Source of the DNA: Octopus sinensis
Taxonomy: Eukaryota
DNA length: 64,000 nucleotides
Reading direction: 5' to 3'
Assembly: GCF_006345805.1 (NCBI RefSeq)
Contig: NC_043026.1
Location: forward strand, 3,224,001-3,288,000
Shown: positions 15,013 through 64,000 of the stretch, piece by piece
How positions within the stretch are numbered: the first letter of the stretch is position 1
Layout of the letters: every line of letters begins with the position of its first letter
Position numbers and translations under genes: made by a program
Notes under the pieces: generated by a model
The model's input: only the letters and a program-made list of their open reading frames with translations
The model's database searches: none
What the model was told of the DNA's origin: nothing

Positions 15013-18000
15013 GGCATCCGTATCAGTAACTCTTGATATACACCCAGTTCACTTTGTAAAGTGGTTGGCATTAGGAAGGGCCACCAGCCATAGAAACCAA
15101 AGGAAAACAGACAGGTGGGGCCTGGTGCAGCTGAACTGGTTTACCTGCTCCCATCAAACCGTCCAACCCATTCCAGCAGGGAAAACAGATGTTAAATGAT
15201 GATTCATCCATTATTATCATCAACATCATCATCATCATTTAACATCCGCTTTCCATGCTGGCATGGGTTGGACGGTTTGACTGACACTGGTAAACTGGAG
15301 AGCTGCACCAGGTTCCAATCTGATTTTGCCTTGGTTTCTACGGCTGGATGCCCTTCCTAATGCCAACCACTCTGAGACCGTAATGGTTGCTTCTTACATG
15401 CCACCAATATGGATGAGAGTAAGGTAGCGAGCTGGCAGAATTGTTAGCGCACTGGACAAAGTGCTTAGCGGTATTTTGCCCGTTGCTACGTTCTGGGTTC
15501 AAATTTCGCCGAGGTCAACTTTGCCTTTCATCCTTTTGGGGTCAATGTAATCGACTTAATACCTATGTCTGTCCTTGTTTGTCCCCTCTGTGTTTAGCCC
15601 CTTGTGGGTAATAAAGAAATAAGTATTTCACCCGTTGCTACGTTCTGAGTTCAAATTTCGCCGAGGTCAACTTTGCCTTTCATCCTTTCAGGGTCGATAA
15701 ATTAAATACCAGTTACGCACTGGGGTCGATCCAAATTTCAGGCCTTGTGCCTATAGTAGAAAGGAATATGGATGTGTGTGTTATCTCAGTCCATATTCCT
15801 GGGTGGGGTAGAAACTTTCATGGGGTCCTAGCAGAAGCAGTCATCACTAGACTTTCTTGCTAGCTTCCCTAGCAGGACCATCTGTGACTGCTAGTCTTGT
15901 TCTCCTGCTTTTTGGCTTCTCTTGGAGGATCCATTTTGCAATTATGTCCCCACTATATTCTAATCACATGTCTGTAGTATTGAAGTTGTGACCTCTCGAT
16001 GGGGTCAAGCAGCTCTTTCCTGTTCCCTGGCTGACCTCTATTTATACAGGGTTAGACACAGAGTGGAAGCAGTTTGTTGTGAAGACTTTGGAATGGTAAT
16101 TGATAATTGCATAGGATGCAGCAATATTTAGAAATGTGTTCTTCAGGACCTGTACATTTGATAACATTAACAGTTTGGCAACATTGTCTGTCTGTGAGTC
16201 TATGTGTATATGTATTCATATGGATGAGGGTAACTGTATAAAGAAATGCTGCTCACTTAGGATGGCATTGAGTGAGGTGATGGAGGCTGATCTCCGGGTC
16301 TGGAACTCTATAGAGGTGATGACAAAGGATGGGGAGAACTGGCAATAGGAACTTGAAAAGACCTTCTGAAATTGGTAAAACTAAGTTCTAGACACTGTGT
16401 ATGTATACACATACATGTATGGGCCTCCAAATTATCTCCTTCTCTACCACCATACGTCTCTCTCTCTCTCTCTCCCTCCCCATTCACTGAACCTTTCAGG
16501 TGAGGTGACAAAGGACCGAGGTATCTGGCGCAGAAGTGTTAAGGCCGTTCCCTGCTGATGAAAAGGGTTGGCCTGCAAGAGTCAGTGCCACGTAAAAGTG
16601 CTCGTGCCAGTGTCACATTAAAACCACTCAACAAACTCTGTAAAAAATGGTTGGCATTAGGAAGGACATCCAGCCATAGAAAGGGCCAAACCAGACTGGA
16701 ACCTGGTGCAGCTCTTCTGCTTGCCAGCTCTGGTCAAACCGTCCAACCCATGCCAGCATGAAAAACAGATGTTAAAAGATGACGATGACAATACACACAG
16801 ACACACACACACAACTGGTCCCTTTGCCCAATTTCCCTATTAAGACACCTCCACTAGATATCTTGATGCTTTGTCATCTCCTTTGAAAGGTTCAGTGAAT
16901 GGAATGGTGGTAGGGGAGGAGAGATAATTTGGTGTATCGATGTATGAGTTCCCCCATCATCTTTGTACCTGCAGCTTCTCCTTCATCTGACTCGTTTTTC
17001 TCAACTGCCCACAACCATTCCACTTGATATCCACCATTAATCCTTTCGCTGTTCTCTCCATCCACATTTTACATTGATCATTCTTTCCCTCTGACCCACC
17101 AAATTATCTCCTTCTCTACCACTGTACGTTTCACTCTCCCCCGTCCCCACACTCTGGCTACCTATACAAACTACACATCATCTCTCTCTCTCTCTCCCTC
17201 ATCCCTTATCCTTCTCTTTCACCACTGTATCTCTATACTAGTATTGCTTTGCCTTTCACTCACATATTTCATTGGTCTCTACCTCTTTATCCACCCCTTG
17301 GTACCTGTTCTCCACTCATTATAGTCACACCCCTCCCGCCAAACCCTCTTGCAACCTCTTTCCCCCCCCTACATTCTTTTATCTTCAGTTCCATCTCGTT
17401 TCGGCTCAGCCTCTACTTTGCCCCTCCAACCATGACATCTCATCACCACTCGGTTTCTCTCTTCCCAGCTCCAACCTGATGGGTCGTCTCCATCCTCTCT
17501 TTTAAGATTTGAGAAAGCATGTTGTTGTTCTTCTTCTACAGCAAGAAACATGATCTGCTCTGGCTCCTTCCCTTATGCTGTAACCCCTCATCATCATCAT
17601 CATCATCATCATCTAGCCTCCGTTTTCCGTGCTTGCATGGGTTGGATGGCTTGACAGGAACTGGTAAGTCCAGGAGCTGCTCCAGGCTCCGATTGTCCGC
17701 TTTGGCTTGGTGTCTATGGATGGATGCTCTCCCTAACGCCAACCACCTTACAGAATGCACTGGGTGCTGAAGTGGAACCATCACCAGTGCTTTCCATGTG
17801 TCACTAGCACCCACACCATGCCTTTCATGTGGCACCTTGGTTTTAGGATCTCCATTCTGTTGTGGTGGGCAAGTATGGCAATGTGCCACATATCTTGGCC
17901 CTCCATCCTCTCCTTTGTCAGGTCCAGCGTTTTGTGATTGGCCTTCAGTACTTCATCCCATGTCTTCTTTGCTTTCCTTGATCATTAGATAGTTAATTAA

Positions 18001-18154
18001 TGTATAATTAGTGCAAGATTCATTACTTTAAATAAACTACTTGATCCAGAACTAAAATCGAAATGTCAAATCAGTTGATGTCTGTGTGTCTGTGCATGGA
18101 CACTTCAGCCATACAACGACTGATGCTTATAAATATATTTCTCTATATTTACAG

Positions 18155-18229
18155 ATGACCACTCCAGCTATTCAGAATGACTTCAGCTATTACAGAAGAA
18201 CAGTTAGTCGTCAGAGGATGACGAATGAG
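18155..18229 (+). CDS. CYRI: CYRI exon 5 (MTTPAIQNDFSYYRRTVSRQRMTNE)
   Basis: tttacag acceptor, GTGAGA donor, 75 nt, phase 0-0. PAIQNDFSYYRRT signature; cumulative codon count places P at 150 and RR at 160-161, as in human CYRI-B. Confidence 0.96.
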
Positions 18230-18409
18230 GTGAGATTTTTGCAGGGGTCGCAATTGCGGTTAGATATTGACTTAATGTCTGGTTCTTACGTATATGATGT
18301 GTGCTGTTAGATCTGCAAGTCTTTCACGACCTCTACATTAGATATTTGTAATTACAGAACATGGTCAGCTTCTGTTCGTTAGTTAGTTAGTAAATTTTTT
18401 GGCTCAAAA

Positions 18410-18740
18410 AGCAAAAAGCAAGGCCATGTAGGGAGACATGGCGTTATGTACAGGGTGGTGTTCATATAAAGAGTTCAGGCCACTTGCGGTCAAGGGAGAC
18501 TTTGAACTGAGCGGTTGTTGGCATCTTCACCATCTCGTCCGGCAGCTTATTCCACGGATCCGCAACCCGGACGGAGAAAGCCCCTCTCCTTCGATTGAGA
18601 TGAAATCGTCGCAAATAGAGCTTTTCGGAATGACCCCGCAGCCGACGCTCTGGAGCAGGAGTGAAGAACAGCTCTTTCGAGAGGTTACACTTTCCGCTTA
18701 TGATGTTGTGAGCAAGAATGAGATGCTGTGGAGGTTGTCA
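18410..18740 (-). mobile_element. CR1-like LINE 3' fragment (duplicate near 51130-51460)
   Basis: Minus frame ...ERRLRGHSEKL...FSVRVADPWNKLPDEMV...FKVSLDRKWPEL, a typical CR1 ORF2 C-terminus. Confidence 0.8.
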
Positions 18741-19989
18741 ATTAGCAGTCAGCTCAACCCACAAGTAGTGAGATCCCTAGCTGGCAACTGGAGGGCAAGG
18801 CTGTCCTTTCAACCCGCTGCTGCGGGTGCCACCATACAATGGACTCTGATGATGATATTATTCCATACTTTCCAATCCATGGCCCTGGTCTTTGCATTCT
18901 TCAGGTCAACGTGACTTTAGGACTTCCAAGCCTTCCTCGAATTGTTGACCATATTTCTTCTTCTTTGGTGCCCTGTGCTGGATTCTCCAGTTGTGTGGGT
19001 TGCTGCCACCACAAAGGTTGCTTCCAGTGCTCATCCTGCCAGTCTTGGTCTCCAATGGTTGTCCTTGGATGTTGTTGTTTGAGATTTGGTCATGTAGGGA
19101 GATACCAAGGATCTGAGGAAGACACTGCATTTGGAACAAGCTTGTTCAGGTTCTGTTTGAGGATGTTCCAGGTATCAGTACTGCAGGGAACGGGCAAAAC
19201 CAGTCAGTGAGGGGGAAAAAAAAGATTTTGATCCTTAGGGAAACGTTGGGCTTCTTCCACACACTTCATTGATGTAGATGCATATTCTTTTACATGTTTC
19301 AGTCATTTGACTGTGGCCATGCTGGAGCCCTGCCTTTAAGGGTTTTTTTAGTTGAAGAAATTGACCCTAGAACTTATTTTTTGTAAGCCTATTCTGTAAG
19401 CCTATTTTGTAAGCTTATTCTGTCGTCCCTTTTGCTAAGTTACAGTGACAGAAACACACCAACATCAATTGTCAAGCAATGGTGGTGGTGGTGGTGGTGG
19501 AACAAAGAAAGACACACACACATATATATATGATGGGCTTCTTTCAGTTTCCATCTACCAAATCCACTCAGAAGGCTTTGGTCAGTCTGAGGCTATAGTA
19601 GAAGACACTTTCCCAGGGTGCCACGCAGCGGGACTGAACCCGGAACCATGTGATAGGGAAGCAAGTGTTTTACCATACAGCTACACCTGTATGTGTATGT
19701 ATTTTATTGTGGCCTCGTTTCAACGGGAGGTGAGATTGTTATAAATGAGTGTCACCCTCCTACAAGCATTATCCTTCATTTCCATTCTTCCTTGGAAAAT
19801 ATATCTGGCTGTGGGCAAATATTACCTTACTCTGAAACTGGTGAGGAATGCTAAGACCACGAATACTCTCCAACCCATGCAAGCAAGGAAGAGTGAACTG
19901 TAAAATGATGCTGATGATGAAGATGTCTCTCTCTCTCTATAATTGTTAAAGAGGACAACAAACATTTAGGCAACACAAACATCTCAAGT

Positions 19990-20909
19990 TCTCCTTGCAC
20001 CTAAGGACTCATGCTCTTCTTTCTCCTTGCACCTAAGGACTCATGCTCTTCTTTCTCTTTGCACCTAAGGACTCATGCTCTTCTAGGACAGCATTCTACA
20101 CCATATGAGATGTCATCGGGTGTACCACAGGGATCTGTCCTTGGTCTCCTCTTGTTTGTGGCATACTCATGCTCTTCTTTCTCCTTGCACCTAAGGACTC
20201 ATGCTCTTCTTTCTCCTTGCACCTAAGGACTCATACTCTTCTTTCTCCTTGCACCTAAGGACTCATGCTCTTCTTTCTCCTTGCACCTAAGGACTCATGC
20301 TCTTCTTTCTCCTTGCACCTAAGGACTCATGCTCTCTTTCTCCTTGCACCTAAGGACTCATGCTCTTCTTTCTCCTTGCACCTAAGGACTCACGCTCTTC
20401 TTTCTCTTTGCACTAAGGACTCATGCTCTTCTTCTCTTGCACCTAAGGACTCATGCTCTTCTTTTCCTTGCACCTAAGGACCATGCTCTTCTTTCTTTGC
20501 ACCTAAGGACTCATGCTCTTCTTTCTCTTGCACCTAAGGACTCATGCTCTTCTTTCTCCTTGCACCTAAGGACTCATGCTCTTCTTTCTCTCCTTGCACC
20601 TAAGGACCCATGCTCTTCTTTCTCCTTGCACCTAAGGACTCATGCTCTTCTTCTCCTTGCACCTAAGGACTCATGCTCTTCTTTCTCCTTGCACCTAAGG
20701 ACTCATGCTCTTTTTCTCCTTGCACCTAAGGACTCATGCTCTTCTTTCTCCTTGCACCTAAGGACTCATGCTCTTCTTTCTCCTTGCACCTAAGGACTCA
20801 TGCTCTTCTTTCTCCTTGCACCTAAGGACTCATGCTCTTCTTTCTCCTTGCACCTAAGGACTCATGCTCTTCTTTCTCCTTGCACCTAAGGACTCATGCT
20901 CTTCTTTCT
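19990..20909. repeat. 32-bp minisatellite (CTCCTTGCACCTAAGGACTCATGCTCTTCTTT), about 26 units (duplicate 52713-53633)
   Basis: Period 32 (19991, 20023); interrupted by an 80-bp RT fragment at 20085-20164. Confidence 0.95.
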
Positions 20910-21767
20910 ATGAACTTTTATGTTTCATTTTTCCTTTTTTTTCCTTCTTTTTTCCTTCATTTTCCTTCTTTGTTTTTCATTTTCCTTCTTTTTTTTCCTT
21001 CGTTTTTCCTTCATTTTTTCTTCATTTTTTTCCTTCATTTTTCCTTCATTTTTCCTTCCTTTCCATTTCCTTATTCTTTTACTCCCTTCCTCTTTGTTGT
21101 CATCTCATTAATATATACCATTCTAATTTTCCCTATCTCTCTCTGATGATAGAACATCCCATACTCGGGGATATCCCAGAAACAGCTTTGACCCTAGGAC
21201 TTATTTTTTGTAATTTTTCCCAATAATAATAATATTTTATATGACTTGAGATGCTTGCCTTAATGTCTGTTGTCCTCTTTAACAATTTTATATCCACTGC
21301 ATCATAAACCTGCAATGACTCCATAACTATCGTCTCAGCTATAACCTTGGAATAGTCCGTCACAGCACTTACCTAGCTTACCTAATCGTTTAGATCACCT
21401 GTAACCCAAACCCCCACACTTTGTATGTATGTATGTGTGTATATATATAGGTGCAGGCGTGCTGTGTGGTAAGAAGCTTGCTTCCCAACCTCATGGGTCT
21501 GGGTTCAATCCCACTGTATGGCATCTTGGGCAAGTGTCTTCTACTATAGTCTCGGGCCAAGCAAAGCTTTGTAAGTGAATTTGGTAGACAGAAAATGATA
21601 GAAGCCTGTTGTATACATGTTTGTCCTCCTCACCATTGCTTGACAACTGATGTTGGTGTGTTTACATACCTATAACTTAGCTGTTTGGCAAAAGAAATCA
21701 ATAAATTAAGTACTCGGCTTACAAAGAATAAGTCTTGAGGTTGATTTGTTTGACAAAAAACCCTTAA

Positions 21768-21986
21768 CCCTTTAGCATTCAGATTATTCTGTCAAATGTA
21801 AAGCTTATATATTCACACCATGTAAAATGAATCTTGCATCATTTCATGGCTTTGAGATTTCAATGATGTGATTGTTTCTTTTTAAAATGACACAATTAGG
21901 TGGCTATGAATGACCATATCTGACTGGTTTGAACATAAAAGAGGGAGCATATTTTGGCCGGATATGGCCAGTTTAAACACTAAGGG
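21768..21986. mobile_element. piggyBac-type MITE nested in a family A SINE (duplicate at 54480-54698)
   Basis: TTAA duplicated at 21764-21767 and 21987-21990; the SINE sequence resumes on both sides. Confidence 0.85.
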
Positions 21987-22080
21987 TTAAAGTGGTGCTC
22001 CAGCATGGCTGCAGTCAAATGACTGAAGCAAGTGAAAGAAAGGAGAAAAGAATAAAAGAAGATGTATTTCTACTTGGCAG

Positions 22081-22203
22081 GATGGTGAGGCTGGTGAAAC
22101 TGAAGTGTCTAATGAAACGGCTAATCGGATGTCACTATTTTACGCCCACGCCACACCAATGTTAAAGATGTTAAGTGACACTACAACCAAGTTTGTGACG
22201 CAG
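22081..22203 (+). CDS. CYRI: CYRI exon 6 ([41 protein letters not shown])
   Basis: ttggcag acceptor, GTAAGA donor, 123 nt, phase 0-0. [23 protein letters not shown] motif. Confidence 0.96.
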
Positions 22204-22814
22204 GTAAGACACCCAACACACAGACATTCCTCCTACAGCAGCAGTTCTTTTGTTCCATTTTTAAGGATGGGTAACCATGGGGGGAGAGGCAATCTTCAAC
22301 TGTTTTCACATTCTGTCTTTGAATTCTACTTCATTCTCTCTTTTTTGTATATAATTTATTAGTTGGGTGGTGGATATTTTGTGCCTATTTTCATTTTTTC
22401 AGTTTAAAATTTCACCTTGATTTCGTCCACACGCAAACACATATTCACAGACGCACACTTTGCAGCTTTACCCAATGCAGTGTTGAGCACTTGTTCTTAT
22501 TGCTCGATATAAGCACGTGTATGTATGTATGTATGTATACACATACTCACACAAACACATGTTTATGAGTGTTAAACAAGAATATTATTGATAGTGACTT
22601 TGAAGTTTTGGCCAGTTAACCCTTTAGCATTCAGATTACTCAGTCAGATGTAATTCTCATTTAATCACATTGTTTTCAATTAATCATGCTTTATCTTGTA
22701 GCTTTGAGATTTTCATGATGTGATTCTTTATTTCCAAAATGACATTGTAGGGTAGGTGTGAGAGGTTGCTTCTGGCTGGTTTCAACATAAAACCTGTAGA
22801 ATATTTTGATCAGA

Positions 22815-22879
<65 letters not shown>

Positions 22880-23034
22880 CAAGATAAGGGCAGAAGAAAT
22901 TGGACCAATACGGTAATAACAAATTTTTTAGAGATTTCTATCGGTTTGTTTCGAGACGCATAAATTTAATGGTTATCGACAATTTTTTGTTTCGGCGTAT
23001 CTGGCATTAGAATTTTTCTTCTGCCCTTATCTTG
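22880..23034. mobile_element. 155-bp MITE with 20-bp TIRs and TA flanks (duplicate 55593-55747)
   Basis: ta-CAAGATAAGGGCAGAAGAAA...TTTCTTCTGCCCTTATCTTG-ta; TA target suggests Tc1/mariner mobilisation. Confidence 0.75.
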
Positions 23035-24947
23035 TAAATTATGTATAAATTTTACCTTTAAAGGCATTTTTTGATATGCTGGCCATTGATAAAATTTTTT
23101 TCCCGAAAAAAGTTTTATCCTATATCAATTATATATATCATCATCATCATCATCATCGTTTAACGTCCGCTTTCCATGCTAGCATGGGTTGGACGGTTCA
23201 ACTGGGGTCTGGCAAGCCCGAAGGCTACACCAGGCCAGTCAGATCTGGCAGTGTTTCTACAGCTGGATGCCCTTCCTGTGTGTGTATATATATACACACA
23301 CACACACACACATACACACACACATATATGTGGAATAAATGTATAATGCACAAAACTCAGAGTAGAGACTGAATGAATCACCAGATTTGCACAGATTTAT
23401 AAACTTTACTTAATGTAGTGAGTATTATTTTTCATGGCTCGAAGAGTTAGGTACAATCCATGCATTCACCTCATGTAGGAACCTGGCAAGCAAAGTATTG
23501 CAATAACCAAACAAAGGTCAGTTATATTTAAGTTAAGGATAAAAAAGGAGCACTTGGCAAATCCAAAGAATGATCTAGCATATCAAGAAGGGTCACAGAG
23601 CGAATAATAATTAACTTGACTGAAGAAGTGAATGAACATTAACGCTGTCACCTATGTTGCATATATTGCATAATAAGCATGGTTTATTTATAGAAACGTT
23701 TGTAACATCAATTTGGCTCCTTTTTACCTCAAATTAATTAATGTATCTAGGTATATGAATATGAGAGAAGGTAAATGGAATACATGAGATTCTTTATTAT
23801 TCAATGCACCAGAACTGTTTGCATAGCATCTCACCTGTGAGGCACCAGTGGAGGATGGGTCAAAGCAGTTGTAGTGAATAATAAAAATCTCATGAATTCT
23901 TTGTCATATTTTATAAATTCCACAGACACAAAGGAACTCCTGAAGTAAGTCCAGTGGCATATACCTCCATATTCTTGTTGACATCAGGTAGCCAAATACT
24001 GTGAATGGGCTTTAAACAGCATACTGCAGGGTGAATACCCAAACATAAAACCATTACCATGTATATATATATATATATAGGCGCAGGAGTGGCTGTGTGG
24101 TAAGTAGCTTGCTAACCAACCACATGGTTCCGGGTTCAGTCCCACTGCGTGGCATCTTGGGCAGGTGTCTTCTGCTATAGCCCCGGGCCGACCAATGCCT
24201 TGTGAGTGGATTTGGTAGACGGAAACTGAAAGAAGCCACGCCTATATATATATATGTGATAGTCTCTGCTCCCATCAATTTCGACATGAGTGTTTGAAGG
24301 AGAAGATTTAAAGAAAAAAGAAAAGAAAGAAGGAAAAAATCTGCAAGTAATTGGATGCCTGACTGTAATTTGAGTTGAGGAATGGATTTTACTATGAAAC
24401 CACAATGGAGACACTGAAGAATTTGATTTTGCCTGGGATTGGGTTTTTCTGGTGATTGCAGGATAGAATTCTTTTATTGTTCTTTTTCCTCAACTCAAAT
24501 TGTTTTGATGCATCGTGACACATTTTACACCATGCAAATTGGTCTGGGCAATAGAGTTTCCTAAGATGTCAAGTTGAGCTGTAGAAATTTTAGTAATTGC
24601 TTCAACTTATCCTTATACCTAAGGGCAAGTCTACCTTAACTGCAATATCCCTCCACTTGTTGACCATACAAAAGAAATTTTGGAATGCGGTCAATTTGCA
24701 TTCAAACCACATATATATATATTTATAAGATCTCACATTTAAAATGTTGTACTTCAAAACCACAAAAGTACTCAGATACAATCGTGTTGGAAGTGTGTAC
24801 TCTGATGTCTGTTTATAATATGTAACCTAAATTTATGTTATTCAGTTTACTTAACCATACTTAGTGTTAAACCCAAATTAATTACTAACGAAAATAATTG
24901 CGATGAAGAAATAAGTAATTAAGGAGAGTCAGTAAAATTATTAGTAA

Positions 24948-25301
24948 TTAGCAGTATCGCCCGGCGTTGCTCGGGTTTGTAAGGGAAATAACTATATAAG
25001 CACAAAGGGGGGGGGGTGTTACTGTAGCTTTTTACGTTCTGAGATTTAATAATAATTTTCTAGAGAGCTACTTCCTTTATATATGCCAAAAATGCATTAA
25101 AAATGGGAAAGATTTATGGTAAATTTTTTTTTATATCGTAGCCTCATCGTAGACGTGCGCTAATACCCAGAAGGGCTCGATATGAATCACGACTATAAGA
25201 TACCCGGTTTTGGTTAAACTGCACCGCAAAATGTGGGAGTAGTTAGGGATCTAAATCGTAGGAGACAGACAGACACACAACCTCTCTTTTATATATAAAG
25301 A
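24948..25301 (-). mobile_element. Non-autonomous Helitron, same family (duplicate at 57660-58010)
   Basis: Reverse-complement homologue of 11837-12138; A|TC start, hairpin, CTAA|T end. Confidence 0.85.
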
Positions 25302-25694
25302 TAAGAGCAAGGGAGGGAACTCTTGAAATATCAATTTTCAAAAATTAAATGTTTGGCAGCTGGTTGAATGAAATATTGTGCCAAACAGATTTTGCAGTGG
25401 TGTGAGGAAAGTGAATCAAGAGAAGTGCATTTAGTCATCATTAACACAGTATTATATTAATAGATGTTTTACCATGCTTATGGCAAACCCTGGGACACAT
25501 GCACTTGCCTGAGTGGCAGGGGAGTCATTAGCTTCTAATTTTATGTGTGTGTGTGTGTATACAGTTCTATATTTAAGAGATGAGGAATTGTGTACATTTT
25601 TGTGTGTGTATATATATATTGGTAAAAACGGTAAGACAACAAAAGAAAGAAAGAAAGAGACCTCAATATTATGTAAATAGAGGAATTTATCTGT

Positions 25695-26036
25695 AAAATA
25701 ATATGAGACAATTACTCAATAGTCAAGATAAAACTCTGAGTTTCAGATGCCGAGGTGGAAATCCACAACACCATCTCTTCCGTTATCTGGCCACCTGAAA
25801 AAATGTTATGAAAAAATACCGTTATATAAAGGGAAATTACTGTATTATAATTCTGCTACTTATATAAATTAAGATTAAAAGTTAATAGTAAACATGTAAA
25901 ATTTATATAACAGTATTTTTTCATAGCGTTTTTCAGATGACCAGATAACAGAAGAGATGGTGTTGTGGATTTCCACTTCGGCATCCGAAACTCAGAGTTT
26001 TATCTTGATTATTGAGTAATTGTCACATATTATTTT
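25695..26036. repeat. Long inverted repeat, about 135-bp arms and 71-bp spacer (duplicate 58403-58744)
   Basis: Arms 25695-25830 and 25902-26036 are reverse complements with several mismatches. Confidence 0.9.
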
Positions 26037-27788: not shown

Positions 27789-27833
<45 letters not shown>

Positions 27834-50952: not shown

Positions 50953-53900
50953 GTGAGATTTTTGCAGGGGTCGCAATTGCGGTTAGATATTGACTTAATG
51001 TCTGGTTCTTACGTATATGATGTGTGCTGTTAGATCTGCAAGTCTTTCACGACCTCTACATTAGATATTTGTAATTACAGAACATGGTCAGCTTCTGTTC
51101 GTTAGTTAGTTAGTAAATTTTTTGGCTCAAAAAGCAAAAAGCAAGGCCATGTAGGGAGACATGGCGTTATGTACAGGGTGGTGTTCATATAAAGAGTTCA
51201 GGCCACTTGCGGTCAAGGGAGACTTTGAACTGAGCGGTTGTTGGCATCTTCACCATCTCGTCCGGCAGCTTATTCCACGGATCCGCAACCCGGACGGAGA
51301 AAGCCCCTCTCCTTCGATTGAGATGAAATCGTCGCAAATAGAGCTTTTCGGAATGACCCCGCAGCCGACGCTCTGGAGCAGGAGTGAAGAACAGCTCTTT
51401 CGAGAGGTTACACTTTCCGCTTATGATGTTGTGAGCAAGAATGAGATGCTGTGGAGGTTGTCATTTAGCAGTCAGCTCAACCCACAAGTAGTGAGATCCC
51501 TAGCTGGCAACTGGAGGGCAAGGCTGTCCTTTCAACCCACTGCTGCGGGTGCCACCATACAATGGACTCTGATGATGATATTATTCCATACTTTCCAATC
51601 CATGGCCCTGGTCTTTGCATCCTTCAGGTCAACGTGACTTTAGGTCTTCCAAGCCTTCCTCGATTTGTTGACCATATTTCTTCTTCTTTGGTGCCCTGTG
51701 CTGGATTCTCCAGTTGTGTGGGTTGCTGCCACCACAAAGGTTGCTTCCAGTGCTCATCCTGCCAGTCTTGGTCTCCAATGGTTGTCCTTGGATGTTGTTG
51801 TTTGAGATTTGGTCATGTAGGGAGATACCAAGGATCTGAGGAAGACACTGCATTTGGAACAAGCTTGTTCAGGTTCTGTTTGAGGATGTTCCAGGTATCA
51901 GTACTGCAGGGAACGGGCAAAACCAGTCAGTGAGGGGGAAAAAAAAGATTTTGATCCTTAGGGAAACGTTGGGCTTCTTCCACACACTTCATTGATGTAG
52001 ATGCATATTCTTTTACATGTTTCAGTCATTTGACTGTGGCCATGCTGGAGCCCTGCCTTTAAGGGTTTTTTTAGTTGAAGAAATTGACCCTAGAACTTAT
52101 TTTTTGTAAGCCTATTCTGTAAGCCTATTTTGTAAGCTTATTCTGTCGTCCCTTTTGCTAAGTTACAGTGACAGAAACACACCAACATCAATTGTCAAGC
52201 AATGGTGGTGGTGGTGGTGGTGGAACAAAGAAAGACACACACACATATATATATGATGGGCTTCTTTCAGTTTCCATCTACCAAATCCACTCAGAAGGCT
52301 TTGGTCAGTCTGAGGCTATAGTAGAAGACACTTTCCCAGGGTGCCACGCAGCGGGACTGAACCCGGAACCATGTGATAGGGAAGCAAGTGTTTTACCATA
52401 CAGCTACACCTGTATGTGTATGTATTTTATTGTGGCCTCGTTTCAACGGGAGGTGAGATTGTTATAAATGAGTGTCACCCTCCTACAAGCATTATCCTTC
52501 ATTTCCATTCTTCCTTGGAAAATATATCTGGCTGTGGGCAAATATTACCTTACTCTGAAACTGGTGAGGAATGCTAAGACCACGAATACTCTCCAACCCA
52601 TGCAAGCAAGGAAGAGTGAACTGTAAAATGATGCTGATGATGAAGATGTCTCTCTCTCTCTATAATTGTTAAAGAGGACAACAAACATTTAGGCAACACA
52701 AACATCTCAAGTTCTCCTTGCACCTAAGGACTCATGCTCTTCTTTCTCCTTGCACCTAAGGACTCATGCTCTTCTTTCTCTTTGCACCTAAGGACTCATG
52801 CTCTTCTAGGACAGCATTCTACACCATATGAGATGTCATCGGGTGTACCACAGGGATCTGTCCTTGGTCTCCTCTTGTTTGTGGCATACTCATGCTCTTC
52901 TTTCTCCTTGCACCTAAGGACTCATGCTCTTCTTTCTCCTTGCACCTAAGGACTCATACTCTTCTTTCTCCTTGCACCTAAGGACTCATGCTCTTCTTTC
53001 TCCTTGCACCTAAGGACTCATGCTCTTCTTTCTCCTTGCACCTAAGGACTCATGCTCTTCTTTCTCCTTGCACCTAAGGACTCATGCTCTTCTTTCTCCT
53101 TGCACCTAAGGACTCACGCTCTTCTTTCTCTTTGCACTAAGGACTCATGCTCTTCTTCTCTTGCACCTAAGGACTCATGCTCTTCTTTTCCTTGCACCTA
53201 AGGACCATGCTCTTCTTTCTTTGCACCTAAGGACTCATGCTCTTCTTTCTCTTGCACCTAAGGACTCATGCTCTTCTTTCTCCTTGCACCTAAGGACTCA
53301 TGCTCTTCTTTCTCTCCTTGCACCTAAGGACCCATGCTCTTCTTTCTCCTTGCACCTAAGGACTCATGCTCTTCTTCTCCTTGCACCTAAGGACTCATGC
53401 TCTTCTTTCTCCTTGCACCTAAGGACTCATGCTCTTTTTCTCCTTGCACCTAAGGACTCATGCTCTTCTTTCTCCTTGCACCTAAGGACTCATGCTCTTC
53501 TTTCTCCTTGCACCTAAGGACTCATGCTCTTCTTTCTCCTTGCACCTAAGGACTCATGCTCTTCTTTCTCCTTGCACCTAAGGACTCATGCTCTTCTTTC
53601 TCCTTGCACCTAAGGACTCATGCTCTTCTTTCTATGAACTTTTATGTTTCATTTTTCCTTTTTTTTCCTTCATTTTTTCCTTCATTTTCCTTCTTTGTTT
53701 TTCATTTTCCTTCTTTTTTTTCCTTCGTTTTTCCTTCATTTTTTCTTCATTTTTCCTTCATTTTTCCTTCCTTTCCATTTCCTTATTCTTTTACTCCCTT
53801 CCTCTTTGTTGTCATCTCATTAATATATACCATTCTAATTTTCCCTATCTCTCTCTGATGACAGAACATCCCATACTCGGGGATATCCCAGAAACAGCTT

Positions 53901-54792
53901 TGACCCTAGGACTTATTTTTGGTAATTTTTCCCAATAATAATAATATTTTATATGACTTGAGATGCTTGCCTTAATGTCTGTTGTCCTCTTTAACAATTT
54001 TATATCCACTGCATCATAAACCTGCAATGACTCCATAACTATCGTCTCAGCTATAACCTTGGAATAGTCCGTCACAGCACTTACCTAGCTTACCTAATCG
54101 TTTAGATCACCTGTAACCCAAACCCCCACACTTTGTATGTATGTATGTGTGTATATATATAGGTGCAGGCGTGCTGTGTGGTAAGAAGCTTGCTTCCCAA
54201 CCTCATGGGTCTGGGTTCAATCCCACTGTATGGCATCTTGGGCAAGTGTCTTCTACTATAGTCTCGGGCCAAGCAAAGCTTTGTAAGTGAATTTGGTAGA
54301 CAGAAAATGATAGAAGCCTGTTGTATACATGTTTGTCCTCCTCACCATTGCTTGACAACTGATGTTGGTGTGTTTACATACCTATAACTTAGCTGTTTGG
54401 CAAAAGAAATCAATAAATTAAGTACTCGGCTTACAAAGAATAAGTCTTGAGGTTGATTTGTTTGACAAAAAACCCTTAACCCTTTAGCATTCAGATTATT
54501 CTGTCAAATGTAAAGCTTATATATTCACACCATGTAAAATGAATCTTGCATCATTTCATGGCTTTGAGATTTCAATGATGTGATTGTTTCTTTTTAAAAT
54601 GACACAATTAGGTGGCTATGAATGACCATATCTGACTGGTTTGAACATAAAAGAGGGAGCATATTTTGGCCGGATATGGCCAGTTTAAACACTAAGGGTT
54701 AAAGTGGTGCTCCAGCATGGCTGCAGTCAAATGACTGAAGCAAGTGAAAGAAAGGAGAAAAGAATAAAAGAAGATGTATTTCTACTTGGCAG

Positions 54793-54915
54793 GATGGTGA
54801 GGCTGGTGAAACTGAAGTGTCTAATGAAACGGCTAATCGGATGTCACTATTTTACGCCCACGCCACACCAATGTTAAAGATGTTAAGTGACACTACAACC
54901 AAGTTTGTGACGCAG
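54793..54915 (+). CDS. CYRI: Duplicate of CYRI exon 6
   Basis: Reads identical to 22081-22203 with intact splice sites; lies in the duplicated block. Confidence 0.8.
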
Positions 54916-55526
54916 GTAAGACACCCAACACACAGACATTCCTCCTACAGCAGCAGTTCTTTTGTTCCATTTTTAAGGATGGGTAACCATGGGGGGAGAG
55001 GCAATCTTCAACTGTTTTCACATTCTGTCTTTGAATTCTACTTCATTCTCTCTTTTTTGTATATAATTTATTAGTTGGGTGGTGGATATTTTGTGCCTAT
55101 TTTCATTTTTTCAGTTTAAAATTTCACCTTGATTTCGTCCACACGCAAACACATATTCACAGACGCACACTTTGCAGCTTTACCCAATGCAGTGTTGAGC
55201 ACTTGTTCTTATTGCTCGATATAAGCACGTGTATGTATGTATGTATGTATACACATACTCACACAAACACATGTTTATGAGTGTTAAACAAGAATATTAT
55301 TGATAGTGACTTTGAAGTTTTGGCCAGTTAACCCTTTAGCATTCAGATTACTCAGTCAGATGTAATTCTCATTTAATCACATTGTTTTCAATTAATCATG
55401 CTTTATCTTGTAGCTTTGAGATTTTCATGATGTGATTCTTTATTTCCAAAATGACATTGTAGGGTAGGTGTGAGAGGTTGCTTCTGGCTGGTTTCAACAT
55501 AAAACCTGTAGAATATTTTGATCAGA

Positions 55527-55594
<68 letters not shown>

Positions 55595-58500
55595 AGATAA
55601 GGGCAGAAGAAATTGGACCAATACGGTAATAACAAATTTTTTAGAGATTTCTATCGGTTTGTTTCGAGACGCATAAATTTAATGGTTATCGACAATTTTT
55701 TGTTTCGGCGTATCTGGCATTAGAATTTTTCTTCTGCCCTTATCTTGTAAATTATGTATAAATTTTACCTTTAAAGGCATTTTTTGATATGCTGGCCATT
55801 GATAAAATTTTTTCCCGAAAAAAGTTTTATCCTATATCAATTATATATATCATCATCATCATCATCATCGTTTAACGTCCGCTTTCCATGCTAGCATGGG
55901 TTGGACGGTTCAACTGGGGTCTGGCAAGCCCGAAGGCTACACCAGGCCAGTCAGATCTGGCAGTGTTTCTACAGCTGGATGCCCTTCCTGTGTGTGTATA
56001 TATATACACACACACACACACACATACACACACACATATATGTGGAATAAATGTATAATGCACAAAACTCAGAGTAGAGACTGAATGAATCACCAGATTT
56101 GCACAGATTTATAAACTTTACTTAATGTAGTGAGTATTATTTTTCATGGCTCGAAGAGTTAGGTACAATCCATGCATTCACCTCATGTAGGAACCTGGCA
56201 AGCAAAGTATTGCAATAACCAAACAAAGGTCAGTTATATTTAAGTTAAGGATAAAAAAGGAGCACTTGGCAAATCCAAAGAATGATCTAGCATATCAAGA
56301 AGGGTCACAGAGCGAATAATAATTAACTTGACTGAAGAAGTGAATGAACATTAACGCTGTCACCTATGTTGCATATATTGCATAATAAGCATGGTTTATT
56401 TATAGAAACGTTTGTAACATCAATTTGGCTCCTTTTTACCTCAAATTAATTAATGTATCTAGGTATATGAATATGAGAGAAGGTAAATGGAATACATGAG
56501 ATTCTTTATTATTCAATGCACCAGAACTGTTTGCATAGCATCTCACCTGTGAGGCACCAGTGGAGGATGGGTCAAAGCAGTTGTAGTGAATAATAAAAAT
56601 CTCATGAATTCTTTGTCATATTTTATAAATTCCACAGACACAAAGGAACTCCTGAAGTAAGTCCAGTGGCATATACCTCCATATTCTTGTTGACATCAGG
56701 TAGCCAAATACTGTGAATGGGCTTTAAACAGCATACTGCAGGGTGAATACCCAAACATAAAACCATTACCATGTATATATATATATATATAGGCGCAGGA
56801 GTGGCTGTGTGGTAAGTAGCTTGCTAACCAACCACATGGTTCCGGGTTCAGTCCCACTGCGTGGCATCTTGGGCAGGTGTCTTCTGCTATAGCCCCGGGC
56901 CGACCAATGCCTTGTGAGTGGATTTGGTAGACGGAAACTGAAAGAAGCCACGCCTATATATATATATATGTGATAGTCTCTGCTCCCATCAATTTCAACA
57001 TGAGTGTTTGAAGGAGAAGATTTAAAGAAAAAAGAAAAGAAAGAAGGAAAAAATCTGCAAGTAATTGGATGCCTGACTGTAATTTGAGTTGAGGAATGGA
57101 TTTTACTATGAAACCACAATGGAGACACTGAAGAATTTGATTTTGCCTGGGATTGGGTTTTCTGGTGATTGCAGGATAGAATTCTTTTATTGTTCTTTTT
57201 CCTCAACTCAAATTGTTGTGATGCATCGTGACACATTTTACACCATGCAAATTGGTCTGGGCAATAGAGTTTCCTAAGATGTCAAGTTGAGCTGTAGAAA
57301 TTTTAGTAATTGCTTCAACTTATCCTTATACCTAAGGGCAAGTCTACCTTTAACTGCAATATCCCTCCACTTGTTGACCATACAAAAGAATTTTTGGAAT
57401 GCGGTCAACTTGCATTCAAACCACATATATATATTTATAAGATCTCACATTTAAAATGTTGTACTTCAAAACCACAAAAGTACTCAGATACAATCGTGTT
57501 GGAAGTGTGTACTCTGATGTCTGTTTATAATATGTAACCTAAATTTATGTTATTCAGTTTACTTAACCATACTTAGTGTTAAACCCAAATTAATTACTAA
57601 CGAAAATAATTGCGATGAAGAAATAAGTAATTAAGGAGAGTCAGTAAAATTATTAGTAATTAGCAGTATCGCCCGGCGTTGCTTGGGTTTGTAAGGGAAA
57701 TAACTATATAAGCACAAAGGGGGGCAGTTACTGTAGCTTTTTATGTTCTGAGATTTAATAATAATTTTCTAGAGAGCTACTTCTCTTATATATGCCAAAA
57801 ATGCATTAAAAATGGGAAAGATTTATGGTAAATTTTTTTAAAAATCGTAGCCTCATCGTAGACGTGCGCTAATACCCAGAAGGGCTCGATATGAATCACG
57901 ACTATAAGATACCCGGTTTTGGTTAAACTGCACCGCAAAATGTGGGAGTAGTTAGGGATCTAAATCGTAGGAGACAGACAGACACACAACCTCTCTTTTA
58001 TATATAAAGATAAGAGCAAGGGAGGAACTCTTGAAATATCAATTTTCAAAAATTAAATGTTTGGCAGCTGGTTGAATGAAATATTGTGCCAAACAGATTT
58101 TGCAGTGGTGTGAGGAAAGTGAATCAAGAGAAGTGCATTTAGTCATCATTAACACAGTATTATATTAATAGATGTTTTACCATGCTTATGGCAAACCCTG
58201 GGACACATGCACTTGCCTGAGTGGCAGGGGAGTCATTAGCTTCTAATTTTATGTGTGTGTGTGTGTATACAGTTCTATATTTAAGAGATGAGGAATTGTG
58301 TACATTTTTGTGTGTGTATATATATATTGGTAAAAACGGTAAGACAACAAAAGAAAGAAAGAAAGAGACCTCAATATTATGTAAATAGAGGAATTTATCT
58401 GTAAAATAATATGAGACAATTACTCAATAGTCAAGATAAAACTCTGAGTTTCAGATGCCGAGGTGGAAATCCACAACACCATCTCTTCCGTTATCTGGCC

Positions 58501-60496
58501 ACCTGAAAAAATGTTATGAAAAAATACCGTTATATAAAGGGAAATTACTGTATTATAATTCTGCTACTTATATAAATTAAGATTAAAAGTTAATAGTAAA
58601 CATGTAAAATTTATATAACAGTATTTTTTCATAGCGTTTTTCAGATGACCAGATAACAGAAGAGATGGTGTTGTGGATTTCCACTTCGGCATCCGAAACT
58701 CAGAGTTTTATCTTGATTATTGAGTAATTGTCACATATTATTTTATTGATATATATATATATATATATTACGGAGATGTACTTGCATAGCAAGTGATTTG
58801 ATCTGAAATCGTGTGCTGAAACAAAAACAATTGCAGCATGGAAGGTGTTTATAAGCCATTTAAGAAACACACAAAAGCCGTTCGATTCACTTTAACATTT
58901 AAGTGTAATTTGTCAAAATATTTTCAGCGCTTTAAGATTGCAACTGTTGACTGATAAAAATCTGTGCTGGTTAGATATATGTATATATATCTATATATAT
59001 ATATATATATCAAAATAGCTTGAGATACGTAAACAAAACCAAACACATATCCACAAAGATGTGTGTGTTGCAAGTGCATGGGTCAGCTGCAGTTTTTAGG
59101 CATAAGAAAATATATTCTCAGTGTGCCTGGTGTTAAAAACACCTGAAAGTAAGTCACATGGTCAAACGAGACAACTCGCCTCAGGTCTCTTCTCTGAGCA
59201 ACAGACACATGTTTCGTCGTTGTTGTGACTTTTCAGTGTTGCAGACCAAACGAGGCCCACTGCAACCTATACATATGACTGGCCATGGCTCTATGCTAAA
59301 TGCTTTATAAACCATCTGCTGGCAAGTCCCAACGTTTCATGCCATGCAAAAAATTCAAATAGGAAATTACAAGCAGCTTCAGGTGTATAAACAAAATCCA
59401 CCCCTGAACTAACAACGTGCATACCCCTAGGTATGTGTGTTCAGTTTGGGTGGGTTTTTTTTTTTATATTGGAGGCTCGTGGCTTAGTGGTTAGTGTGTT
59501 GCACTCAGGATTGTAAGGTTGTGGTTTCTGTTCCGAGACTGAGTCATGTGTTGTATTCTTGAGCAAAACATTTCATTTTATGTTGCTCAGTCCACTCAGC
59601 TGGCAAAACTGAGTAATCCTGTGATAGACTGGCGTCCCATCCAAGTGGGGGAGTAAATATGCCACAAAATCTGGGAAACTGCCCTTATGAGTCTATGGCT
59701 CAGGAGGTCCCTTTCATCCTTTAGGATAGACATATTTATTCTGAAACGTTTTTTTTTTTTAAACACATAAAAGCAATGCACATTCACTAAATAGCGCACT
59801 CAATACCTGTGCAACATGTAACATTTGTTGTAATTTTATTGATTCTAATTTTGAAGATTTATTGGGTTTCCTTTGTTCAAAATCTCTTTGAAGCTACTCC
59901 CAACAAAACTCCAAAATCAGCTCCAATAAAATGACACACAGAGACTACATTAAATCATATTTGATGGCTTACAAGGTACACCAGCTTATAATGCACTCCT
60001 TAATTTTTGAAGGTCCTTTCTTAAGCCACTGCATTACAGATCCTAAGATGCAGGTTAAAGTTTCTAGAACATTTTTTGGCTTTTGTATAAAGTGTTCCTT
60101 ATAAGCTATCAAATAATATCTTCTAAAAGATATTAAATTGAATAAATCAATGATGGAACTGATACTCAAATTTGGCAAAAGAAAAAAGAGAACAAATTTC
60201 AGATTGTGTTTGGATTTGAATACCAGTTTTAAAAAATCCATTTTGTTTTTATTGAATCTTTTATAAATTTGAAATTTTAAACTGAAAAAAAAAAAAAAAT
60301 CCCCAATTATTTTAGCAATTTGAAATTGATCTAAAATTTTAAATTGGTAAAATAAAAATGAATTGTTTTTTTTTAATGAAATTTTATTCAAGTTTAGTTT
60401 ATGGAAACTTGTTAATTTTATTTTAATGAATTTCTTTTCAGTTTGCTCTGACTTTATCTCTGTTTTTGTAAAATATATATGCATATGACATAATAT

Positions 60497-60541
<45 letters not shown>

Positions 60542-62897
60542 ATGTATTTGAAAAATATATTCTATAAAATGGAAGCTTGAATCTACTCCCCCTGGAGCCT
60601 CATAAGTTGCTTCGGGGTTGAACTATCCTTACTTTGAAAAAGTTGCAATTAAAATTCTTAAATGTTTATAAATTAAGAATATCTCATTCTCAAGAGACCT
60701 TAAGTCTGGTGACAGCAGACACCACAGAATTGTGGGGGGAAAAAAGTTTCAATTTCTTTATACTATACACATAATGTTTGACTACTGTATATTCTGTATT
60801 CAGTATCTCCTTAATTAAGGTAACACTAATAATGGCAAAGAGGAACTATTTCTTATATATTAATTTGTCGAGAATTTGGGGGTGCTAGGTTTAAAATCCC
60901 ATTTTATAGAATACATTTTCTGAATATTTATTTTTATATCTTTTAAAATATATATGTTTGTAAAAATATTTTAATCAAACTGTGTTATTGAAATATCTTG
61001 TAATTTTATAAAAAGTCATCTTTGCCAATTATAAAATCCACTTTTTAATTATTAATGATCCTGTGTCATTCATCCGTCCAAGGTCCATCAAATCAAATAT
61101 TGGTCAAGTTCTGGGATAGGTACTCAACTACACTTTCCCTTCAAAATTTCTTAATATAGGCCATGCGAGTGAATGAGATCCACTGACTCAAGGAAGCACT
61201 GCTTGTTCTTTTAGTGTAGCATAGGAAGTTCTCTGATGAACTCGGCACTTTAATTGTACTTTAATTGTACTTTAGGTTGACTCGTTAGTATTCAGGTTAT
61301 TCTGTCTGATTTTATGCTTATTTATTTACCTTGATTTGAACTAATCATGCATTATTGCATAGCCTTGACTTTTTGATCGTATGACTGTTTAGCTATCAAA
61401 TGACATTGTAGGGTAGGTGTGAGAAGCTAGATCTGGTCAGTTTGAATGTAAAACAGGAAGAGTTTTGGGGCCAGATAAAGCAGGCTTCACCATCATCCTC
61501 ATCATCATTTAGCATCTGTTGTCCATAGCATTTAAACCAACCAGAACATGCTACCTGTTTTACGTTCAAACCTCCTAGATCTAGTTTCTCATACCTACCC
61601 TACCAGATCAGTCAAAATATATACAATCATACCTTCAAAATCCCAATGCTACCTGATACAGAACGGCTAATTCAAAGCAATGTGGTGGATAAATAAGCTT
61701 TACGCTTGACAGAATAATCGGAATGCTAAAGGGTTAACTCAACCTGTCTTGTGTCAGAGGAATGTGTTGCTGCTACAATGTTCGTTTTTGCAACCATGTA
61801 ATAATCCGGAATAGCCATTCCACTACACTTTGGCATTTGTCTCTTGCTGTAGCTTTCAGATGACCCAATGCCAAGGAAAGGGAAATTTGGTTGATGGACA
61901 CTGCACAAGTGTGTGTGTTTATGATGAAGGCTTCACACTGGCATGAGATGCAGTTAAGTGAAAAAGTACTGTTTTATTAATGTTTCGATTAAAGTGGAAT
62001 AACCTTGTTTAGTCAAAGTAGGGATCCCTAATCAAAAGGTTATCCTTTTGGTTTCAGTTCTGAACTAAGAACAGGGAACACAATTCTCTGTTAATACAAA
62101 AACTCAGCTGATTTTCCTTCTATGATGTAAAAAAAAAAAAAAAAAAAAGAAAACAAAACAAAACAAACAAGTGTCCCTTGTAGTCAGTTGATAAATAGGG
62201 AAGGCTAAAATAAATCCCAGAATAAGGAGTGGACCTAAAATGATGGACTGGAAACCCTATTGGGTCCAGTGCTCCAGCTTCAACCAGTTAACCTTTCATT
62301 ACTATATTTCTATTAAAATGCACTGCTTTTGTTTCAGTTAATTTTGAAAATAATCAAGAATTTATCAAAATATATTTTTTATTCAGCCTTTTTTTAAGCA
62401 TAAATTAACATAAAATTTTGACAGAAGGTTTTGATATAGATCACTTTAGCACTAGAGTTTTGTATCAGAGATCTAGGGTTAGTCCTCAGGCAGGTTGGTA
62501 TCAAAAGAGCTAATGTATATATACAAACATAATGTTTTAATTATTTTATTAATTATGGAGACAAAACAATGCAAGTTATAAAAAAAGAATACAGGTTGAT
62601 GGTTCCTGCTTTTACCTGGTTTTGAAGAAGGGATCTGAATTCTGCAATATTGAAATGCAAGGTAAAGCTAGAAACCATCAACTTGTATTATTTTGACTTT
62701 ATAACAAAAAGAAATAACTAAAAATGTTTATTTATATCAGACAATGTTTCGTGCAAGTAGCCCATATGCAGAGCAGTACTTAGTGTTGCCACTTCTCTAA
62801 GATAGGGATAATTCATTCTAGGCTAGCTGCAGAGTGAAAAATTAATGAGAATCAAAAGGTTTTATCCCTCACAGAAAGCATTACAAACAGGATTGCA

Positions 62898-63753
62898 TTT
62901 TGCACCAAAAAGCCAATATGGGGGTTTCTCTCGTGGTGTCTACCACAGTATCGTTTGTCCAAACAGAATACCCATGTTTAAGCGGGGATAAATATTGCCG
63001 TTCAATATCAATACTGCCTCTGTCCCTAATTATTTTTGTACTTTTTAACAAGCTCACTGACAAATCACAACACTGGCACCTGTTTCAGCACTATTTATTC
63101 TATACATTGCTGGCACTAAGATGATTCGCTGCTATCTCTAGCTGTCAAGGGTCCATCACTGATGAGACCAAGGAAGGTTGAAATCACATGATCTGGTGAC
63201 CTCAGTGTTGGAGGTGGCAGGGATTTATTCCCTACTAGCGATATAAACAAGAGTGTACTTTGTACCAAAAGCCAATATGGGGGTTTCTCTCGTGGTGTCT
63301 ACCACAGTATCGTTTGTCCAAACAGAATACCCATGTTTAAGCGGGGATAAATATTGCCGTTCAATATCAATACTGCCTCTGTCCCTAATTATTTTTGTAC
63401 TTTTTAACAAGCTCACTGACAAATCACAACACTGGCACCTGTTTCAGCACTATTTATTCTATACATTGCTGGCACTAAGATGATTCGCTGCTATCTCTAG
63501 CTGTCAAGGGTCCATCACTGATGAGACCAAGGAAGGTTGAAATCACATGATCTGGTGACCTCAGTGTTGGAGGTGGCAGGGATTTATCTCCCTACTAGCG
63601 ATATAAACAAGTGTGTACTTTGTACCAAAAGCCAATATGGGAGAGGTTCTCTCATGGCATCTACCACAGTATAGTTTGTTCTAACAGAACATCCCATGTT
63701 TAAATGGGAATAAATATTACCTCTCTGTCACTAATACCGGCCTCTGTCACTAA
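62898..63753 (+). repeat. Duplicate of the 359-bp hammerhead array (HHRs at 63149-63202 and 63508-63561)
   Basis: Same sequence as 30166-31021; predicted cleavage after 63193 and 63552. Confidence 0.9.
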
Positions 63754-64000
63754 TATATATATATATATTCACAAATTCCACTCTCGGTAATCTGGGAATA
63801 TTCAGACTGGCATAACATTAAGATAAGGGAATGGTAGTTGTAATATAGAGTGAAAGTATTATGTGTTATTTCCGTTTCTTTGTTACGTCTGCTTCAAGAT
63901 TCCTGAGTGTTTCAGAGGAAACTTGTCTTTCAGTCGGAGCTTTCCACTTAACACTACAGATCTCTCTCTCTAATATATATATATGTATGTATGTATATAC

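Follow-up and report, generated by a model that had tools for sequence, protein, structure and literature searches.

Does the CYRI-B gene of Octopus sinensis carry two of its coding exons twice, and is its product, a regulator of Rac1, longer as a result? The question is raised by a stretch of 64,000 nucleotides of scaffold CM016888.1 (assembly GCA_006345805.1, approximately positions 3,224,001-3,288,000, plus strand), referred to here as the window, in which exons 5 and 6 of the gene recur on the two sides of a scaffold gap. An initial annotation of the window proposed a real duplication within the gene that would double its Rac1-binding segment. Our comparisons of the copies, which were based on assembled contigs, RefSeq models and public proteins, gave no support to that proposal: the first copy ends at the gap, a third copy elsewhere on the scaffold also ends at a gap, the spacer between the first two copies does not recur, the sister species are single-copy, and the join of exon 6 to a second exon 5 is absent from the gene models. 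We consider it probable, on the assembled sequence, that the doubled exons are a false duplication in this PacBio/Hi-C assembly, created when overlapping contigs were left uncollapsed at a structural variant in intron 4. Most likely, then, CYRI-B is not lengthened by them.

Exons 1 to 6 of CYRI-B

Candidate exons were located with a CYRI probe, and their exact boundaries were then read off the sequence. The window holds exons 1-6 of CYRI-B, and the translated exons match XP_029653613.2 (P0001), "CYFIP-related Rac1 interactor B [Octopus sinensis]", at 100%. The exons, and one stretch of intron that was annotated as coding, are as follows:

5838-5910, plus strand: CYRI-B exon 1, with the start codon and the MGNLL... 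N terminus; single copy; 100% match to XP_029653613.2.
8084-8205, plus strand: CYRI-B exon 2; single copy.
12277-12382, plus strand: CYRI-B exon 3; single copy.
13966-14102, plus strand: CYRI-B exon 4; single copy.
18155-18229, plus strand: exon 5, copy A; 75 nt, phase 0-0; aligned to CYRI-B P150, R160 and R161.
22081-22203, plus strand: exon 6, copy A; 123 nt, phase 0-0; aligned to interface residues N185, S188, L189 and A192.
22204-22362, plus strand: stretch of intron 6 translated as the C-terminal tail of XP_029653613.2 (P0001); stop at 22362.
50878-50952, plus strand: exon 5, copy B; identical to copy A; first coding exon of XP_029653561.1 (P0166).
54793-54915, plus strand: exon 6, copy B; identical to copy A.

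Exons 5 and 6 are bounded by AG and GT splice sites, and copies A and B are identical not only in the exons but also in 60 nt of flank on each side. The exon lengths, the 0-0 phase, the identical recurrence and the intact splice sites described in the initial annotation were thus confirmed from the sequence. It had also stated that no exon 7 lies between the copies, and indeed no exon 7 or later exon was found anywhere within the 64-kb window, with queries that included the closest full-length cephalopod proteins. Its arithmetic was likewise correct, in that splicing in the order 1-6-5'-6'-7 would add 66 amino acids in frame.

The 212-amino-acid product of exons 1-6 belongs to the CYRI/FAM49 family (DUF1394, PF07159), with a profile score above the curated cut-off (276.7 bits versus 23.1; E 2.9e-82), and it matches the crystal-structure chains of CYRI-B (7AJK, E 3e-72, and 6YJJ). 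The Rac1-interface residues R160, R161, N154, S157, N185, S188, L189 and A192 are all kept, with P150 nearby, and in the alignment to 7AJK chain C the segments MTTPAIQNDFSYYRR and ANRMSLFYA are conserved. This alignment assigns P150, R160 and R161 to exon 5 and the NRMSLFYA interface motif to exon 6. Rac1 binding requires R160 and R161, and the interface further includes N185, S188, L189 and A192 (PMC7955166). The placing of P150, R160 and R161 in exon 5 that we started from therefore held, as did a role for them in Rac1 binding, with the qualification that P150 adjoins Rac1 but does not contact it directly (PMC7955166).

The helical bundle of CYRI-B comprises residues 26-215, and R64 and Q68, which are encoded by earlier exons, also contact Rac1 (PMC7955166). 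Exons 5-6 encode only residues ~147-212 of the bundle. Because the bundle spans 26-215 and also uses R64 and Q68, a repeat of this segment would not simply make a second site; repeated exons 5-6 would presumably insert into the bundle next to the Ratchet subdomain and form no second binding site.

Compared with CYRI-B/FAM49B of known family and structure (PF07159; 7AJK, 7AJL, 6YJJ), the gene in the window is a clear ortholog that aligns at full length over exons 1-6 and has kept the N-terminal MG start, P150, R160/R161 and the NRMSLFYA interface motif. The octopus gene is ordinary once the assembly redundancy is discounted; it differs in having an alternative Ser-rich exon, placed between exons 6 and 7, that is used in octopods and in some other cephalopods.

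The first copy of the block ends at a scaffold gap

Self-comparison within the window showed that 15696-31268 corresponds to 48469-64000 at 99.4% identity, with copy B running past the end of the window. The DNA downstream was reached through RefSeq model P0166 and joined to the window to give an extended frame of 125,269 bases, in which a block of 22.3 kb (15696-37970) recurs at 48469-70706 with 99.5% identity. This repeat is far above chance. The block contains the end of intron 4, exon 5, exon 6 and the start of intron 6. The segments that make up the locus, including a long interspersed nuclear element (LINE) and fragments of short interspersed nuclear elements (SINEs), are:

15696-37970, plus strand: block copy A; 22.3 kb, the end of contig 1; left edge ancestral, right edge the contig end at the N gap.
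37971-38070, no strand: N gap; 100-N scaffold gap between contigs 1 and 2; sole run of N in the window.
38071-48468, plus strand: spacer X; 10.4 kb, the start of contig 2; unique in the window except for dispersed SINE fragments.
46483-48468, minus strand: LINE fragment; a 5'-truncated, frameshifted non-LTR (non-long-terminal-repeat) retrotransposon; Pfam RVT_1, E 4.1e-30.
48469-64000 (to 70706 in the extended frame), plus strand: block copy B; followed by the alternative exon at 74118 and by exons 7-10 at ~102.1-115.3 kb.

The two edges of copy A are of different kinds. Because copy A is 100% identical to the O. vulgaris sequence across 15496-15896 and the SINE at 15696 is intact in it, its left edge is ancestral. 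Its homology to copy B ends at 37970, the last base before the N gap, and this right edge is a contig end, not a duplication boundary. Contig 1 breaks ~0.5 kb before the point equivalent to a 630-bp (TATA)n array in copy B, and such a TA-rich array is a typical break point for an assembler.

The gap itself sits in intron sequence, and therefore no reading frame crosses it. The 2 kb to its left are collinear with the O. vulgaris ortholog (L004) up to L004:42856, beyond which O. vulgaris runs into sequence that in O. sinensis follows copy B (from 70707). The 2 kb to its right have no match in the CYRI loci of O. vulgaris or O. bimaculoides except for dispersed SINE copies. The two flanks of the gap are thus not ancestral neighbours, because the left one continues after copy B and the right one has no ortholog in either outgroup locus.

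Gaps between duplicated pairs on one scaffold are, together with half read depth, hallmarks of false duplication (PMC9516828). Here a gap separates the pair on one scaffold and homology extends up to the contig end; the third copy of the block likewise ends at a gap.

The spacer and its junction with copy B

If the arrangement had arisen by a simple tandem duplication inside intron 6, the sequence to the left of copy B would be the end of the duplicated unit and should recur after copy B. No second copy of X was found in extended 70707-125269, that is, after copy B, and X is absent from the CYRI loci of O. vulgaris and O. bimaculoides, introns included. A simple tandem duplication was therefore rejected. 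Nor does copy A offer the right-hand boundary that would be looked for in a tandem duplication, since its right end falls outside contiguous sequence, at the contig end.

Two other sources of X were considered and rejected. X is not the other haplotype of the region of exons 1-4, as it has only dispersed SINE fragments in common with 1-15695 and contains no CYRI exons; no gene is annotated in it. A simple LINE insertion would not account for it either, the LINE being only ~2 kb long and its 3' tail being followed by a reverse-oriented SINE and unique DNA, and not by the left flank that would be expected (...15695). X might conceivably be the product of a very long 3' transduction by the LINE.

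The SINE in which copy B starts is cut at 48469 and abuts the truncated LINE at 48468. It is the truncated 5' end of the LINE that forms this X-B junction, and a microsatellite-like 3' tail lies near 46483-46512. There is no homology between the two flanks of the junction, the left being LINE and the right the 3' part of the SINE, and the junction is base-for-base identical in two contigs, both of which reach beyond it by more than 7 kb in one direction and by more than 22 kb in the other. Because of this lack of flanking homology and the identity in two contigs, we take the junction to be a true structural difference carried by one haplotype.

Could the junction instead be a technical chimera, a mis-join made by the assembler at repeats, with the same reads seeding two contigs and no structural variant in the animal? 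The junction does lie between two repeats, a LINE and a SINE, and copy B and the third copy (L002, described below) are nearly identical outside the block (0.33-0.40 single-nucleotide polymorphisms [SNPs] per kb), as if they came from the same molecules. However, the join does not run through shared repeat sequence, its flanks being without homology, and it is the same in two contigs with the long arms given above. A mis-join is on this evidence most improbable.

A third copy and three partial gene models

A homology search with the C-terminal half of the protein returned short, distant proteins only, and the model that contains exons 7-10 was found through a cluster listing. The listing held three partial O. 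sinensis CYRI models, all on scaffold CM016888.1:

XP_029653613.2 (P0001), 264 aa: exons 1-6, then read-through of intron 6 to the stop at 22362.
XP_029653561.1 (P0166), 179 aa: copy-B exons 5-6, then exons 7-10; starts at the exon 5 methionine.
XP_029653619.2 (P0163), 131 aa, 'uncharacterized LOC115226738': exons 5-6, the alternative exon and read-through; L002 10001-33398.

Two of the three end in translated intron. The locus of P0163, L002, is the third copy of the block (copy C). It corresponds to CM016888.1 4472315-4515712, reversed, and so lies 1.2 Mb away on the opposite strand; it matches extended 40878-76690 at 99.8%, spacer X and the X-B junction included. L002 stops at a 100-N gap of its own, and contig 2 continues, collinear with O. 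vulgaris at 99.4%. The suffix of L002 and the prefix of contig 2 overlap end to end over at least 35.8 kb. In the assembly as a whole exons 1-4 are present once, exons 5-6 three times, the alternative exon twice and exons 7-10 once.

Contigs 1 and 2, meanwhile, form a fork, in which two left flanks lead into one shared block, and a second right flank of the block was seen in none of the contigs. A fork with a single right flank is exactly what a heterozygous structural variant gives. A true repeat also gives this picture, but only if every contig broke before the right boundary of the repeat. If L002 is natively anchored where the scaffold places it, the sequence arrangement would fit a heterozygous inversion of ~1.2 Mb with a breakpoint in intron 4 of CYRI-B, which would break one allele.

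The copy numbers bear on a larger real tandem duplication, with a unit of more than 77 kb that runs from 15696 to X and with X native to DNA situated downstream of the gene, at a distance of more than 10 kb. In that case a collapsed first set of exons 7-10 would be hidden by the gap, and behind the intact gene (exons 1-10) there would be a partial copy (exons 5-10), without any doubling of exons in the mRNA. Such a duplication needs one novel junction, between the end of one unit and the start of the next, and one is seen; contigs 1 and 2 have the order and orientation that the duplication would require, and X lies outside the 10-kb flanks that were examined. Yet only one set of exons 7-10 exists in the assembly and in its annotation, a partial second CYRI model is lacking in both O. 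vulgaris and O. bimaculoides, the inverted third copy 1.2 Mb away is not predicted, and more than 50 kb must have collapsed while the 22-kb block did not. We therefore think a duplication on this scale rather improbable.

Related octopuses have a single copy

One exon 5 and one exon 6 are present in O. vulgaris (L004, OX597841.1, a locus that is complete and without gaps), and the same is true of O. bimaculoides (L005, CM046628.1). A single copy in closely related assemblies is the pattern expected of a false duplication, and the initial annotation had itself named a single exon 5-6 set in other assemblies among the results that would together speak against its proposal. O. vulgaris is collinear with the window over 1-37970 and then with the extended frame over 70.7-125 kb, so that it has the equivalent of a single copy of the block. 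A 325-amino-acid protein (P0164) is common to O. vulgaris and O. bimaculoides and is identical to the window over exons 1-6.

O. vulgaris and O. sinensis split ~2.5 million years ago (Mya) (PMC10700109). Duplicated genes in the BUSCO set of conserved single-copy orthologs make up 5.2% in the O. sinensis assembly, as against 0.5% in O. vulgaris and 0.4% in O. bimaculoides (PMC10700109). With 5.2% of BUSCOs duplicated, most apparent duplications of conserved genes in the O. sinensis assembly are expected to be artefacts.

No exon 6 to exon 5 join in the gene models and public proteins

Splicing of exon 6 to a second exon 5 would create the junction string AAGTTTGTGACGCAG followed directly by ATGACCACTCCAGCT. 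The join was found in none of the RefSeq models or cluster members, and none of the 285 proteins that were fetched carried it. Although the join would give a complete reading frame, RefSeq instead used read-through and a new start, and we infer from these models that junction reads from RNA sequencing (RNA-seq) did not support it. By exact look-up, the doubled products of 391 and 438 amino acids were absent from a collection of 15 billion public proteins; the normal protein of 325 amino acids was present there, recorded only from genome annotations. A search with peptides spanning the exon6-exon5-exon6 junction was insensitive, as it missed known octopus proteins as well.

A CYRI model from a sturgeon, Acipenser sinensis (P0072, 'UNVERIFIED_CONTAM', 358 aa), has two tandem copies of the segment equivalent to exon 6. 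A similar artefact of assembly or annotation is the probable cause.

Alleles or paralogs?

The three copies of the block (A, B and C, the last being L002) were aligned with O. vulgaris as the outgroup. Among 54 biallelic SNPs, A differed from B and C at 27, C from A and B at 17, and B from A and C at 10. Derived alleles were shared by B and C at 14 sites, by A and B at 7, and by A and C at 2. A strict paralog tree, ((B,L002),A), did not hold up, nine of the 23 polarised sites being in conflict with it.

The differences are also unevenly distributed. B and L002 differ by 1.21 SNPs/kb inside the block versus 0.33-0.40/kb in X and downstream (3.3-fold, p = 0.01). Between A and the other two copies, 12 SNPs fall in the 1.8 kb next to the junction (15696-17500 versus 48469-50270), or 6.65/kb, compared with 0.73/kb over the other 20 kb (p = 4e-7). 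The divergence on the junction side could mark an old haplotype around the structural variant, or else the edge of a duplication that escaped gene conversion. Taken together, the SNP pattern would fit two haplotypes mixed among three consensus sequences better than it fits a clean paralog tree, which is supportive of allelism but not decisive. Real paralogs could also show such a pattern, through gene conversion or through cross-talk during polishing.

The pattern also bears on a complex cis duplication in which at least one haplotype really holds exons 1-4, block A, unknown sequence, X, block B and exons 7-10, so that the mRNA could carry a 66-amino-acid repeat. Several features agree with such an arrangement: the order and orientation on the scaffold fit; the exon copies have intact, identical splice sites and phase 0-0; the X-B junction is present in two contigs; the three contigs could represent copy A in collapsed form and copy B in two haplotypes; and, as just described, A differs from B and L002 at 27 sites, with a derived allele common to B and L002 at 14. 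Against it, copy A is linked to X only by a scaffold gap, the right-hand boundary of copy A is not seen, and X is foreign to the locus, so that a simple tandem event is impossible. In addition, the ((B,C),A) tree is contradicted at nine of the 23 polarised sites, the RefSeq models and public proteins lack the exon 6 to exon 5 join, the sister species, separated by ~2.5 million years, is single-copy, and a second set of residues ~147-212 in the middle of the helical bundle would likely be harmful in a strongly conserved single-copy gene. An arrangement of this kind is, in our estimation, very improbable. We expect even less that a young cis duplication in the order A, X, B exists on at least one haplotype and that some CYRI-B mRNA carries a 66-amino-acid in-frame repeat of the last third of the Rac1-binding bundle.

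How a false duplication could have arisen

We propose that the sequenced animal carried, on one haplotype, a structural variant at the point between 15695 and 15696, whether an inserted segment of 10 kb or more, an inversion or some other rearrangement. The junction of the variant would be the truncated LINE joined to the SINE. The fork at the variant would have kept the assembler from merging the two haplotypes, and the scaffolder would then have placed the overlapping contigs serially with a 100-N gap, such that exons 5-6 seem doubled within one gene. The true transcript would be the normal one, with exons 1-10 and a product of 325 amino acids, together with isoforms that use the alternative exon. 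The initial annotation had itself cautioned that the copies might be an uncollapsed haplotype. This caveat offers the better explanation, but an incomplete one, as it also needs the real junction between 48468 and 48469 on one haplotype.

Several points weigh against a false duplication. Three assembled copies exceed the expectation for two haplotypes, and one natural reading of them is that copy A was collapsed and that a real X-B locus is represented by both of its haplotypes. The X-B junction, present in two contigs, looks biological, and some real rearrangement therefore exists. The negative transcript evidence is indirect, the negative results from public proteins are weak, and the single-copy comparison was made in other species, not in other O. 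sinensis individuals. With these points in mind we still regard a real duplication of any kind as unlikely.

The case resembles the false heterotype duplications described previously (Ko et al. 2022, PMC9516828; Rhie et al. 2021, PMC8081667) in having nearly identical copies separated by a gap within one scaffold, a copy that ends at a contig end, a further copy that is misplaced, a gene split into partial RefSeq models, a raised fraction of duplicated BUSCOs and a single copy in related assemblies. Published cases also include falsely duplicated exons that were annotated as additional '-like' loci, either on the same scaffold or on a different one (PMC9516828), a pattern that recurs here. The octopus case departs from them in that contigs 1 and 2 do not simply overlap end to end but form a fork, since the first 10.4 kb of contig 2 are foreign to the CYRI locus, and in that there are three copies, not two. 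Moreover, that class is defined by read depth and k-mer multiplicity, whereas the octopus case was assessed on assembled sequence. With a genuine in-frame tandem exon duplication, on the other hand, the octopus exons share the 0-0 phase, the intact splice sites and the capacity for in-frame splicing. What they do not share is a spacer that is the end of a repeated unit or a visible right-hand boundary; no model or protein examined has the exon 6 to exon 5 join, and the sister species are without the duplication.

Consequences for the reference annotation

The O. sinensis reference divides one conserved gene among XP_029653613.2, XP_029653561.1 and XP_029653619.2, none of which is full length. 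Gene counts, orthology tables, expression quantification and analyses of exon duplication will be wrong at the CYRI-B locus unless the redundancy is removed, and the practical value of the case is as a warning. The LINE-SINE junction in intron 4, as read in the assembled contigs, suggests a structural variant that segregates in O. sinensis, and this variant may disrupt one CYRI-B allele.

Were the duplication real, a protein that otherwise hardly varies among octopods would have gained an internal in-frame repeat very recently, which would be of moderate interest for the biology of CYRI and Rac1; if the repeat were present in the mRNA, it would constitute a lineage-specific variant of a highly conserved Rac1 regulator.

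Repeats and an alternative exon at the locus

The introns contain many copies of a SINE-like element of ~400 bp, in both orientations and with 72-92% identity (33446-34462, 5973-6374, 38522-38951 and many others). The 3' region of the LINE (46483-46736) is also multi-copy, with up to 94% identity to 23127-23277, which suggests that the SINEs may share the tail of the LINE. A reverse-transcriptase segment from a LINE of the same family is spliced between the last exons of an older O. bimaculoides CYRI model (P0168, UniRef A0A0L8I9M0, 592 aa), in which an intronic LINE has been annotated as coding sequence.

Intron 5 holds a 32-bp minisatellite (20165-20909 and 52888-53633) of ~23.6 copies with 95% matches, which is also present in O. 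vulgaris and is the cause of the many offset matches in the self-comparison. A 359-bp tandem repeat of 2.3 copies lies in intron 6 (30153-30986, and also 62882-63758).

Finally, we note that the alternative Ser-rich exon between exons 6 and 7 encodes 47 amino acids (LSTESVSCSKTHVNSSSS...GCINEGE) and is found at extended 74118-74258, at ~33241-33381 of L003 and at 33201-33341 of L002. It is used in isoform X1 of O. bimaculoides (372 aa), and a related insert is present in transcript-derived proteins of 361 amino acids from another cephalopod (P0003 and P0170).

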